DNA of 58,859 bases from Octopus sinensis (taxonomy: Eukaryota): contig NW_021832283.1 in the NCBI RefSeq assembly GCF_006345805.1, positions 1-58,859 of the forward strand, written 5' to 3'. The position numbers were made by a program, and so were the translations under genes. Under the pieces are notes generated by a model. It worked only from the letters and a program-made list of their open reading frames with translations, searched no databases and was not told the DNA's origin. Positions within the stretch are counted from its first letter, which is position 1; every line of letters begins with the position of its first letter. Positions 22,430 through 54,269 of this stretch are shown one piece after another.

Positions 22430-22489
22430 TATCTATCTATCTATCTATCTATCTATCTATCTATCTATCTATCTATCTATCTATCTATC
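22430..22489. repeat. (TATC)n, 5' flank of Tx1 copy B
   Basis: Direct reading. Confidence 0.97.
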
Positions 22490-22663
22490 GACAGACGTGT
22501 TGTCACCTCGGCTCCGAAGGTAATCGTTTATTTTGACTATTTATAGCCCATATTTTGTGTACATTTTTGTACATTTTTGAGTGCTTTTCCAAGGGAGGAA
22601 TTCGCCCCTAGGGGCAGTTTCAACCCTATTTTATTTACGTATTTTTCTTCTCGACATTAAAAA

Positions 22664-24550
22664 ATGTCGAGAAATGTTATTGTAGAACCCTGGTCAAATT
22701 CCTTTATGGACCAGCATTTTCCTAGACTTGAAACGCTAGGAGAAAAAAGAACGTATGCACGCACACACATTCGACAAAGACAAACCTGAATGACGTGGTA
22801 GTGAACGCTGCAACCACTTGCGGTAACAGCCCTGTCACCACCACCACCACTAACAACAACAACAACAACGAGACTACTACTGCTACCACCACCACCACCA
22901 CGACCAACATAAATTATAAAAATGAAACTCACGTGAATACTATTAACAAAAACAACAGCAACAAGAAGAACAACAACAAAAATGAAATAAATATTTTACC
23001 ATCTAATAGTGAAGATATTAATATAAAAGAATCAACAGCACCAGTAAATTTCGCTGACACTCTGCGTCAGAAAAAAAGAAATAATAAAATTTACGAATGA
23101 AGAGTTAATAGAAACGAGAGCACTCTTTACAACCCAAGGGCAGGATTTAGTGCTGCATACACCTCAACACATAAAGGAACAAATAGAAAATAAGACAATT
23201 ATATATAAAATTATAAGAAAAAACAAAAAACAAGATGAACAGATTACAAAAACGGACATAGAAAAGTGTTTAAAAACATAATGAAAGAAAAGAATATATA
23301 AACAGGGGTCCCTAGTTTAATACAGTGGTGGTCCACTTCCCTAACCAAAAGGTGGCAAAAGCTCACTCTACGAAGTCTTTGCAAAATGATGAAATCATCA
23401 TGGTCCCATATTACAAAGGCCAGAGTGTGAGTAGAATTAGCATTAAAAATGTACCCCACGAGATACCTAACAAATGGATAACAGGAGCGATCTGTTACCA
23501 TTTGAAAACGATAAACATATTAGAAACCTCCGTGTACAAAAACGACAATTGGGGTGGTAAAACAGTAGTAGTGACCATCCAGATTGAGAGGTCCTCTATC
23601 GAGAACCCACCTGATAGGATCCATTTAGAAAATGGGCAAATCCTATGTGTTGTAGCAGAAGGCAAAAAGCCCAGATGCTACAACTGCGGCAGCGCAGAAC
23701 ATTTAATTGCCAAGTGCGCTCTGGCAGATAAAAAAAAAGAAAGAACAAATCAGAAAACAAATAAAAAACCCTTGTTGGCAACACCAACACCAACACATTC
23801 AATTATGGAACAATGCCAAGAAAAACAAGAAACCAGCAAACAAACCCCAACAACATCATCAACAAAAGAAACAGTACCAACACAATCACCGTTGACGTCG
23901 CAACCAATTCATCATGCTGAACCAACAAAATGTAGACCAACACTAACACCGAGGACGACAATTAAAAAGACAGAAAACAGTGACGAGAAAACAAATTCTA
24001 CCCCTAACACCACAACAACACAAACACAGCACAAAACATCAACAATTTCTACAAGCATACATATTAACGCAAATGCTTTGCCTTACCCCATTCTGATACG
24101 TCCGACGACGAAAGTTCGACGGAATGGCAAATAGCCATAGGTGGTAAAAGGAAAAGATCAAAAAAGCCCACCAAACAAGGAAGTAAAGCAGGGAGATATT
24201 TAACTCCGGACAGCATCCCCCTAGATAATCAAAAAATCAATGAACCCGCAAAACCACACACACAACTAACTGCAATAGACACAGACAATAAAAAATTAAT
24301 GGATTACATTGCATCCAACACGGACATCTGTGAAGATGACTTTAAGACAAACAATCATCCGCGCACCACACCACCGAAACACATAAGAATTGTACATGTA
24401 ACACAAACAGAACACCATACACTGAAAACAATATTTCCAAATGCGGTAGGCGGGTTTCAACGATACCTCTCAAAAAAACTATTCAAACAACTCATCAAAG
24501 ACACTACAAAAGAAGAACAAAAAACTGAAACTTTCGAAATGAGTAAGTGA
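22664..24550 (+). pseudogene. Tx1 ORF1 (low-complexity N-terminus, RRM-like region, CCHC knuckle, T/Q-rich C-terminus), frameshifted
   Basis: ORF pieces 22795-23100, 23325-24134, 24299-24550; CX2CX4HX4C at about 23676-23718; likely ATG at 22664. Confidence 0.8.
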
Positions 24551-52400: not shown

Positions 52401-53513
52401 GTATAGGTGGTTGAGGTTTGTGATATCAACATCATTAACTGAAATTATATCCTTAAGTGCAAGCCGGATTTTACCAATTATTTTCATGTTTTGGTTAGAG
52501 TTGCGGATTTTAGGAAGTGTACCACGCTCAACCATGCTGGTTCTTTAATTTTCAGCCATTCAATCATGATTTGATTTTTTAGCTCATGTAGTTCTGTTGG
52601 GTCAATATTTGTGTGACTTTCTTTATCTATTTGATGCTCATCTGTCTTAGTGTTTATGATTGGTTCAGGGCGTATTTCACTTTGCCTATCACTTATACTA
52701 ACTCTTTCAATCTCTCTTCTTTTTTTTATCCGCCCTGGGCTGGTCTATAATCATTTCCTCTGTATTATCTTCTCTAGCTGCAGCTTCGTTCATTTTATCC
52801 GATATTGCTTGTCTAACCTGATCAATCTCTACTTCAGTCAGTAATTTCTTTTTTATAATTTCTTCTAACATTGGCAAGCTTGTTACTGTCTATGTAGGGT
52901 CTTACTTCAGGGTGTTTCTGTCTCCAGTTTAAGTATGCTTGTACAGTGCTAGACTATCTGTGGGGAAATATATGGCATGGTAGTAGAAGCCTCAAGAACT
53001 TCTTTATTATCTTCCCTAGACCATTTTTCCTTCTTTTTCTTTTGATTATTGGTGATGAGCATGGATGGCCATCTGTTGGAATATTCCGGTTGTGGGGTTC
53101 GTCCAGCTCCTGTGTGTTGGGAAGATTTGATCCAGTAACTGATTTTTCAATCAGGATTTGGTTCAATTTTCGGGTACGTGGTCTTTTGTAATCCGCGCAA
53201 TGACCAATGCGGTTTATTGTTTGATTTGTTGACCTTGAAGCATGACGAGCATCCATTCTTATATTAGGAGATGGATCTGTCAGTTTAGGGTTCACTACAT
53301 GTAAGCATTGCTCATAGCGCCGCTTCTTAGACTAGCAGATCTATATTCGTCTGTATTTTTTTTGTTGATAGTTATCTCCGGACATTTTTTTTTTTTCCTC
53401 CTTTCCTCCTCTTCCTTTCTTCAAGGCTTACTGTGTCTGTATTAGTTCGAAATAATGAGAATAAAATACGGAGAGAAGGAAACGAAAAGAAAGGAAAAAG
53501 ACGGGATCTGTCA
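49412..53513 (-). mobile_element. near full-length Dong-like copy F, degraded
   Basis: ATG about 53385; KWSREDNKEVLEA...NKLANVRR; GCKDQLLINKM; QGDSLSPLLF; YMDDLK; CRVCKQQNETIDHVVSKC; NRPDIILKD; stop about 49585; short TAA-like run at 53514-53533. Confidence 0.9.
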
Positions 53514-54269
53514 GTTATTATTGTTATTACTATCACTTCACCACCATCCATCATCAGCAACATCACCATCACCATCATCATCTTCAATGTGTAGCCACAG
53601 CCACCATCAACACTCCATTGTGTTGGAGAATGGGTGTGTTAAAGAATTCATGTTCTTTGGGTCTATAAATAGTGGTAGATGGTGGAGACAAAGGACGTTA
53701 ATGGTCAGTAAAAGGTCAAACCTGTTTACGTTTATATTTTTTTTTCCTTTCTCTTTTCTTCTTCACCACATGCATATGTATATGTATATATATGTATATT
53801 CACTCACACATATTATCTGATGTTTTCCGAAGATTTTTTTTCTTTTTTTTAAATAACTTTCTGAGTTCAATGTTATGTATATATTTTTTAATTTCTGAAT
53901 TCAGTTGTATGTATATAGTAGTAGGTGCTTAATTCCATAACTTTTTATCGTGCATTTAATTGTGTTGTTACAATAAAAGGTAATTTAAAAGGCAATTTTA
54001 CACATTCTTATAGTCATGAGAGACGACTAAATGTAAATGTTCACACAGAATTGGAGATATGTATGTTCTAATTTTTCTGTTAGGTGTACGTTTGTACGTT
54101 TGTATGAGCTGTAGATATGTAAGTTTTTTTTTTTACTTATTTTGAGGGTAATTCAAATTACTTACAGAAAACAGTAGATCTTCCAGTTTTCTACAGTTGA
54201 CCTGCTGGGTTCGCTGTTGCCAGTTCAGAGCATCGTAAAAATACGTCCATCCTCTGTCACGTCCAGCCT

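Follow-up and report, generated by a model that had tools for sequence, protein, structure and literature searches.

The stretch of DNA considered here, hereafter the window, spans all 58,859 nucleotides of contig NW_021832283.1 from the Octopus sinensis assembly GCF_006345805.1 (forward strand), and its principal occupants are long interspersed elements (LINEs) that abut arrays of the trinucleotide TAA. The DNA is AT-rich, eukaryotic in character and dense in LINE fragments and short interspersed elements (SINEs); simple repeats account for 11.3% of it, with AAT-type arrays covering 2.8% and AGAT/TATC-type arrays 0.72%. Scans with ARAGORN and Rfam found no tRNA gene or Rfam family in the window. 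Arrays were delimited with TRF, domains with Pfam, protein similarities were placed with tblastn, and likeness within the window was assessed by self-BLAST. The copies considered are C, C', D, E and F, which are LINEs of the type bearing a restriction-like endonuclease (RLE); A, B and G, which are of the L1 type; the SINE families SINE1 and SINE2; and a 556-bp non-coding segment. The LINEs are assigned at group level only, as R2-like with an RLE or L1-like with an apurinic/apyrimidinic-type endonuclease (APE), by comparison with solved R2 proteins and human L1 ORF2p; among the matches to protein searches with the Dong-like and L1-type queries there was no named Dong, R4 or Tx1 protein.

The TAA-associated copies fall into at least three families lying side by side (C/C', D/E and F). 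C (29000-33109, the first coordinate approximate, minus strand) is a Dong-like, RLE-bearing LINE of about 4.1 kb and full length, with about five frameshifts or stops. Beside it lies C' (~33457-33962, minus strand), a 5'-truncated copy of the same family that comprises the last ~500 bp, is 93% identical to the 3' end of C (28909-29503) and retains the last 45 amino acids of the open reading frame (ORF). D (35366-38182, minus strand) is Dong-like, probably slightly 5'-truncated, and carries an internal deletion that removes the CCHC motif and the RLE: when compared by tblastn with the protein P0006, an intact relative, residues 825-870 are joined directly to residues 1197-1220, so that residues ~870-1197, endonuclease included, are lost. 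E (~48544-49366, plus strand) is a 5'-truncated Dong-like copy reduced to the RLE domain and the 3' untranslated region (UTR), and F (49412-53514, minus strand) is a full-length Dong-like copy of about 4.1 kb with several frameshifts.

Pfam detects the reverse transcriptase (RT) domain RVT_1 in C (2.5e-28) and F (3.1e-16), and the RT of D was placed by tblastn. The catalytic YMDD lies at 30644-30655 in C, 36075-36086 in D and 51125-51136 in F. Downstream of the RT, E and F share the layout CX2CX8HX4C followed by [KR]PDI..(12-14)..LIDM, with the CCHC motif at 48659-48712 and the PD..D at 48897-48953 in E, and the equivalent motifs at 50095-50148 and 49842-49898 in F; in C the CCHC motif (29610-29663) is followed by RPDIVV before a frameshift intervenes. 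By Pfam, no APE domain (Exo_endo_phos) is present in any of the TAA-associated copies. Protein searches recover more than 2000 relatives at identities of up to 53%, mostly of ~1200 amino acids and on ~4-kb contigs, and C is ~50% identical to its 1200-residue homologues. The alignment of P0006 with the solved R2 proteins spans the RT and the endonuclease (3e-31) and, together with the motifs, places the copies in the R2 group of RLE-bearing LINEs. On their sequence, the TAA-associated elements have the layout of this group: the RT comes first, then a CCHC motif and a PD-(D/E)xK endonuclease, and there is no APE. Within the group, membership of C through F in the Dong/R4 clade would follow by analogy with the elements described below.

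The junctions of these copies form two clusters. In the first, the plus strand reads from 28909 to 38195 as (TTA)31, C, (TTA)116, C', (TTA)25, the 556-bp segment, a 772-bp array, D and ATTATTATTA, and four inserts in the same orientation are stacked within it. The (TTA)31 array (28909-29001) reads as (TAA)n in the sense direction of C and forms the 3' flank of that element; (TTA)116 (33110-33458, 349 bp) separates the 5' end of C from the 3' end of C'; and (TTA)25, with two ATC interruptions (33963-34037), lies between the truncated 5' end of C' and the 556-bp segment. The 3' flank of D is the 772-bp compound array of (TTA)n, (TCA)n and (CTA)n (34594-35365), and the inferred 5' limit of D is marked by the short TTA-like AATAATAAT (38183-38195). 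In the second cluster the plus-strand order is (AAT)33, E on the plus strand, (ATT)16, F on the minus strand and TTATTATTGTTATTAC. Here (AAT)33 (48445-48542) flanks E at its truncation point (48544); (ATT)16 (49364-49411) corresponds to (TAA)16 at the 3' end of F and has the wrong polarity for E; and TTATTATTGTTATTAC (53515-53530) is a short TTA remnant at the inferred 5' end of F.

Taken together, TAA stands on the sense strand of the element in all five copies. C and C' are each flanked by long arrays at either end, D and F have such arrays at their 3' ends (35366 and ~49412, respectively), and E has one where its 5' end is truncated. Of the five 5' junctions, three (C, C' and E) therefore lie in long AAT-type arrays, for which a binomial estimate gives ~2e-4 given that such arrays cover 2.8% of the window. 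Long arrays at these 5' junctions are not explicable by a templated 3' tail, and the presence of an array at the very points where C' and E were truncated indicates that the repeat is the target of insertion and not just a copied tail. These observations support the conclusion that the RLE-bearing LINEs land in (TAA)n in a fixed orientation. An earlier note on this DNA had proposed that every Dong-like LINE abuts TAA with the same strand polarity and that each insertion leaves target on both sides, to be abandoned were the repeats confined to the 3' side. The repeats are not so confined, as C, C' and E attest, and the contact with TAA on the sense strand is borne out throughout; the flanking of both sides by long arrays holds for C and C' but not for the remaining copies, and the 3' end of E meets an array of opposite polarity.

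The same junctions recur beyond the window. We considered five loci from other assemblies (L007-L011), whose encoded proteins are ~50% identical in amino acid sequence to the Dong-like copies. L007 has (AAT)36 upstream and (ATA)20 ~96 bp past its stop codon; L008 has (AAT)7 ~78 bp past the stop codon; and in L009, (TAA)8 lies upstream and (ATA)13 downstream. Two further loci each hold two head-to-tail copies, separated by (AAT)13 in L010 (2292-2500) and by AATAATAAAAATAAAT in L011 (982-1167), and in both the second copy starts with the conserved 5' terminus CCGCGTGAACAAGAA. All arrays in these loci have the sense polarity, which argues that the whole protein clade behaves in the manner described for Dong.

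Dong elements are known to target TAA microsatellites in Bombyx mori, in Anopheles gambiae (DongAg) and in the snail Biomphalaria glabrata (DongBg) (PMC3812793), and the RLE-bearing clades are for the most part target-specific (PMC4640811). The window copies resemble them in having a single ORF that encodes an RT and, downstream of it, a CCHC motif and an RLE, with no APE; in ending with (TAA)n and inserting into arrays of that repeat in one polarity; and in a length of ~4-4.5 kb, frequent 5' truncation and occurrence in molluscs. They differ in being only ~50% identical to the nearest database proteins, none of which is named, in the adjoining of at least three diverged families within one window, and in the presence of D, an internal-deletion derivative devoid of the endonuclease. 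In this last respect D recalls the SIDE-type internal-deletion derivatives of R2, likewise retaining the 5' region, the RT and the 3' end with loss of the endonuclease region; the difference is that the deletion in D might have arisen either before insertion, with mobilization in trans, or in place afterwards. Further, Dong-R4 and L1-Tx1 elements are abundant and possibly active in octopus (PMC13282606, PMC8967140). In Octopus vulgaris, five Dong-R4 families account for 1129 recent near-full-length insertions and 4,732,901 bp (PMC13282606), from which table we compute ~4.19 kb per insertion, a size that C and F, at 4.1 kb each, match.

Hence, we consider it highly probable that the core of this locus consists of five decayed copies of a single-ORF, Dong-type LINE that inserts specifically into (TAA)n in one orientation. 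Briefly, we advance the following mechanism, in which the domain content, the junctions, the polarity and the recurrence in relatives are matters of observation and the cleavage and priming steps are modeled on the R2 group and Dong. The endonuclease would nick the (TTA)n strand of an array, as the R2-group and Dong precedents suggest, and a (UAA)n stretch at the 3' end of the element RNA would anneal to the nicked strand. Reverse transcription would then be primed at the nick, often ending early to yield 5'-truncated copies such as C' and E, and the second strand would be cut elsewhere within the same array. Each insertion would thereby leave array on both sides and add a TAA tail of its own; the site would thus stay usable, and successive copies could stack head to tail in a single orientation. 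All the TAA-associated copies in the window are decayed and dead, and it is from the precedents just named that we infer both activity and cleavage specificity.

Several points weigh against this reading. The 5' sides of D and F hold just 9-16 bp of TTA-like sequence, and the 5' boundaries of both elements were placed partly on that very motif. The boundary of F draws support from the near equality of its length to that of C; an alignment of the 5' UTRs of C, D and F, attempted as a means of fixing the 5' ends of D and F, was uninformative on account of the divergence of the families. E lacks a tail of its own and runs straight into (ATT)16 of the opposite polarity, which is the tail of F. Its 3' UTR is 79% identical to that of D up to GGAAGCAAATT, and the last 13 nt of D are missing from it; the insertion of F may have removed the end of E, or there may once have been a palindromic (AAT)n(ATT)n array. 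Among the relatives, L008 has no array upstream. Finally, some families of the Hero clade likewise target microsatellites (PMC4640811), so that the target does not in itself prove that these copies belong to the Dong/R4 clade.

A subset of these points would fit an account in which the arrays are the tails of the elements themselves, produced from a templated (UAA)n or by slippage of the RT, with later copies priming on the tails of earlier ones. TAA is indeed found at every intact 3' end, D and F have nearly nothing at their 5' ends, and the lengths of the arrays are highly variable. However, the long arrays at the truncation points of C' and E cannot derive from the RNA of those elements, a 349-bp array adjoins the 5' end of the full-length C, and in L007, L009 and L010 arrays lie upstream of conserved 5' termini. 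We accordingly give the tail account little credence as a replacement for target-specific insertion; the two origins are not exclusive, since tails can seed or enlarge targets.

Some simple-repeat tracts in and around the clusters deserve record. TAA-type arrays with no recognizable LINE occur at 2796-2903 and 54297-54563; the latter has the compound structure (TTA)n(TTG)n(TTA)n, with (TTC)n ahead of it, and superficially resembles the 5' end of C. A candidate third Dong-like 5' end at 54259-54296 was rejected, the similarity being confined to (TTC)n low-complexity sequence. Directly past the inferred 5' end of D (38267-38697) there is a 335-bp (AGC/AGT)n array with a higher-order period of 81 bp, followed by (TA)50.

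The 556-bp non-coding segment (34038-34593, with no strand assigned) lies, as the earlier note had it, between (TTA)n arrays. Self-BLAST and blastn-short find nothing like it elsewhere in the window, its tail does not resemble those of C, D, E or F, ARAGORN and Rfam detect no tRNA or Rfam head in it, and a scan of the JGI metagenomes gave no match. The left-hand array, 75 bp long, agrees at 74 of 75 positions with the opening 75 bp of the right-hand array, the double ATC included, and two to three other offsets match about equally well; the match is a possible long target-site duplication of ~75 bp. The segment may be an insert mobilized by Dong, or it may be unique DNA between two arrays.

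The most conspicuous of the L1-type elements is B (22490-28334, plus strand), a Tx1-like LINE of 5.8 kb that is full length and inactivated; octopus L1-Tx1 elements measure ~5.4 kb per insertion (PMC13282606). Pfam detects zf-CCHC in its ORF1 and Exo_endo_phos (the APE), RVT_1 and zf-RVT in its ORF2. The closest protein, P0121 (66% identity), is encoded on a 3-kb contig without element ends, and an alignment of the intact relative P0122 with human L1 ORF2p, covering residues 3-856 at 8.8e-63, places B in the L1 group. The organization of B is that of an L1-group LINE: ORF1 is separate, and ORF2 combines an APE, an RT and a Cys-rich domain at its C terminus. ORF2 has at least four frameshifts and three in-frame stops, and its YxDD motif reads YADG; B is consequently full length but dead.

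B is bounded exactly on both sides by (TATC)n. On the left, (TATC)15 (22430-22489, 60 bp, 100% pure by TRF) passes from TATC directly into GACAGACGTG; on the right, AAAAAGT is followed by TATCTATC, which begins a run of ~50 TATC units (28335-28535, ~200 bp) that gives way to (TA)n as far as 28606. Within the right-hand array, 26 bp downstream of B (28361-28372), the repeat is broken by the hexamer ACGTGT, which occurs also in the first 15 nt of B (GACAGACGTGTTGTC, 22490-22504); the shared hexamer could be the footprint of an earlier event or pure chance. The window has one copy of the B family, and the exact 5' end of B is unmatched in the JGI metagenomes. The other TATC-type array, (ATAG)n at 4984-5145, has no LINE adjoining it. 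Likewise, no simple repeat adjoins the relatives L004-L006, which are ~40% identical to B and of which only L006 includes DNA past the 3' end.

Microsatellite-specific Tx1 elements have precedent, with (TC)n, (TTC)n, (TTCC)n and (TTTC)n as recorded targets (PMC4494074). B resembles Kibi, which uses (TC)n, Koshi, which uses (TTC)n, and the crocodilian Tx1 elements of (TTCC)n and (TTTC)n in lying precisely inside an array, here a tetranucleotide one, and in having no poly(A) tail. It also resembles the microsatellite-specific Tx1 elements in an ORF1 with an RRM-like region and a CCHC motif and an ORF2 with an APE, an RT and a C-terminal CCHC motif. It differs from them in its motif, in being represented by one copy, and in that its relatives and a SINE that shares its tail lie outside simple repeats; the working criterion of Kojima for a microsatellite-specific family is that more than 20% of flanks show the repeat. 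The insertion of B inside (TATC)n, put forward in the earlier note, is thus a full-length element with exact bounds, although a dead and solitary one, and on present evidence it is a single event. A real preference for (TATC)n may nonetheless lie behind it, a possibility that we take seriously while leaning against it.

A more ambitious proposal joins two parts, namely that B represents an L1/Tx1 family that targets (TATC)n and that the 556-bp segment is a non-autonomous element moved by Dong with a ~75-bp target-site duplication. We regard the two together as unlikely, yet not so far-fetched as to be set aside.

On the minus strand, LINE A (10312-~13900) is related to B and likewise Tx1-like; it has undergone an internal deletion, and its 3' tail occupies 10312-10380. 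Its amino acid identity to B and P0121 is 52-57%, and its RT stops at ~10625. The 3' tail directly adjoins the head of a SINE1 and not a simple repeat. Next to its 5' side (13990-14540) are ~24 copies of a 23-bp unit (AAATTTAGTGATTAACAGTGAAC), which could be monomers of a 5' UTR or a satellite target. Several copies of SINE2 are present in the window; those at 17767-18400 (plus strand) carry a 3' tail like those of A and B, with 34 nt matching the A tail at 91% and ~60 nt matching the B tail at ~70%. Two distant relatives, L002 and L006, also carry the core GCCYTGTGG..AATAAARG of this tail at their 3' ends. The sites that SINE2 occupies are ordinary ones, and so are its short target-site duplications, TATATTGTCAGTA and TTATTATCT. 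At 17819-18190 one SINE2 has a 184-bp internal tandem duplication (88% identity), and the whole unit lies between direct repeats of TATATTGTCAGTA.

By its shared 3' tail, SINE2 is a non-autonomous partner of the A/B lineage, with no simple-repeat niche. In this it is like the known LINE/SINE pairs that operate through tail recognition, carrying ~35-60 nt of the A/B 3' tail; it is unlike the target-sharing SINEU/Tx1-Mar pairs, having in common with its LINE the tail and not a simple-repeat target. As a candidate target of the A/B lineage we considered and set aside TTGTCAGTA, which is found past the 3' end in L002 and in a SINE2 target-site duplication and is absent in L001 and L004-L006. The relative L002 (ENA ERZ25071366 ctg14421c), 41% identical to B, comprises at least three head-to-tail copies with a ~6.5-kb period and no simple repeat between them; this layout may be an artefact of a circularized assembly, the contig name ending in 'c', or it may be a real array.

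Fragment G (42724-44455, minus strand, its 3' limit tentative) is Tx1-like, with similarity to ORF1 only: the ORF1-like part extends over ~43690-44455, the ORF starts at ~44373, and tblastn aligns it to ORF1 of B at 41% identity over 78 amino acids (43696-43929). A hidden Markov model built from ten relatives and run with filters off found neither endonuclease nor RT in 38700-45000, and the idea that G is a full-length Tx1 element was therefore rejected. At its 5' end G adjoins a SINE1 head half (44456-44630), at the (TG)n(TA)n tract internal to that SINE, and its 3' end may be marked by the SINE1-like tail at 42724-42780, with no simple repeat after it. Of the proposal that a Tx1 copy starts at the (TA)n tract of a SINE, the contact thus persists, but for an ORF1-like fragment whose probable 3' end lies outside simple repeats; moreover, the 5' junctions of L1-type insertions are uninformative on targeting. 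Similarly, the two SINE families that had been credited with tails matching LINE tails part ways: SINE2 matches both A and B, but the tails of SINE1 and G may or may not be a genuine pair.

SINE1, a tRNA-headed family with an internal (TA)n(TG)n tract, has ~10 copies in the window. The head half at 44456-44630 ends at the internal microsatellite and a tail half at 39198-39444 begins at its own; both are on the minus strand, and they are 5 kb apart; they may be the parts of one SINE1 split by a ~5-kb composite insert that holds G and a complete SINE1 (40396-40870). Elsewhere, at 16387-17139 on the minus strand, long low-complexity open frames run over perfect (CGGCGGCAG)8.7, (TGA)28 and (ATG)29; these could belong to a repeat-rich exon or be simply compound microsatellites.

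The foregoing bears on the larger claim of the earlier note, that several autonomous/non-autonomous pairs divide the simple repeats of this genome among themselves, with Dong in (TAA)n, the Tx1 element B in (TATC)n, the Tx1 element G in (TA)n and the passengers in the same niches. Its attractions are real: (TATC)n borders B exactly at either end, in a window where AGAT-type arrays amount to only 0.72%; many Tx1 families are target-specific, and SINEs that share the target of a LINE are documented (PMC4494074); the tail of SINE2 matches those of A and B; and the 556-bp segment lies in TAA with a possible 75-bp target-site duplication. Yet there is one copy of B, and any simple repeat, at 11.3% of the window, would have counted as a match; its relative A ends at a SINE1 head; SINE2, the actual passenger of the lineage, occupies ordinary sites with ordinary target-site duplications; and L004-L006 adjoin no simple repeat, L006 being the informative case as its 3' flank is included. 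Further, G is an ORF1-only fragment that touches (TA)n just at its 5' junction, and the 556-bp segment has no detectable relation to the Dong tails. Such a partition of repeats hence seems to us improbable; what survives of it is the pairing of Dong with TAA, the rest hanging on one dead copy in (TATC)n and one 5' junction at (TA)n.

Least credible of all is a passive association, in which transposons and microsatellites accumulate alike in a gene-poor, repeat-rich region and adjoin by coincidence: the 11.3% of simple repeat and the density of SINEs and LINE fragments would suit it, but the junctions are exact, the polarity is consistent in five of five copies, only TAA-type arrays are involved even though they make up 2.8% of the window, and the same junctions recur in five unrelated assemblies.

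In conclusion, the association of Dong-type LINEs with TAA is genuine, with clear statistics and an understood mechanism, and such behavior has already been published. Were both parts of the joint proposal on B and the 556-bp segment true, at least two LINE lineages with different types of endonuclease would each be using a different microsatellite in this genome. As (TATC)n is not among the LINE targets given in PMC3812793, PMC4494074 and PMC4640811, it would be a new LINE target if the preference of B proved true, and this is the sole part of the window that could add something to what is known. For the rest, the window offers a readable example of a target-specific LINE reusing one microsatellite, complete with stacked inserts, truncated copies and a deletion derivative. 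It extends the known behavior of Dong at TAA repeats to a cephalopod genome, as ordinary transposon behavior that opens no new question.

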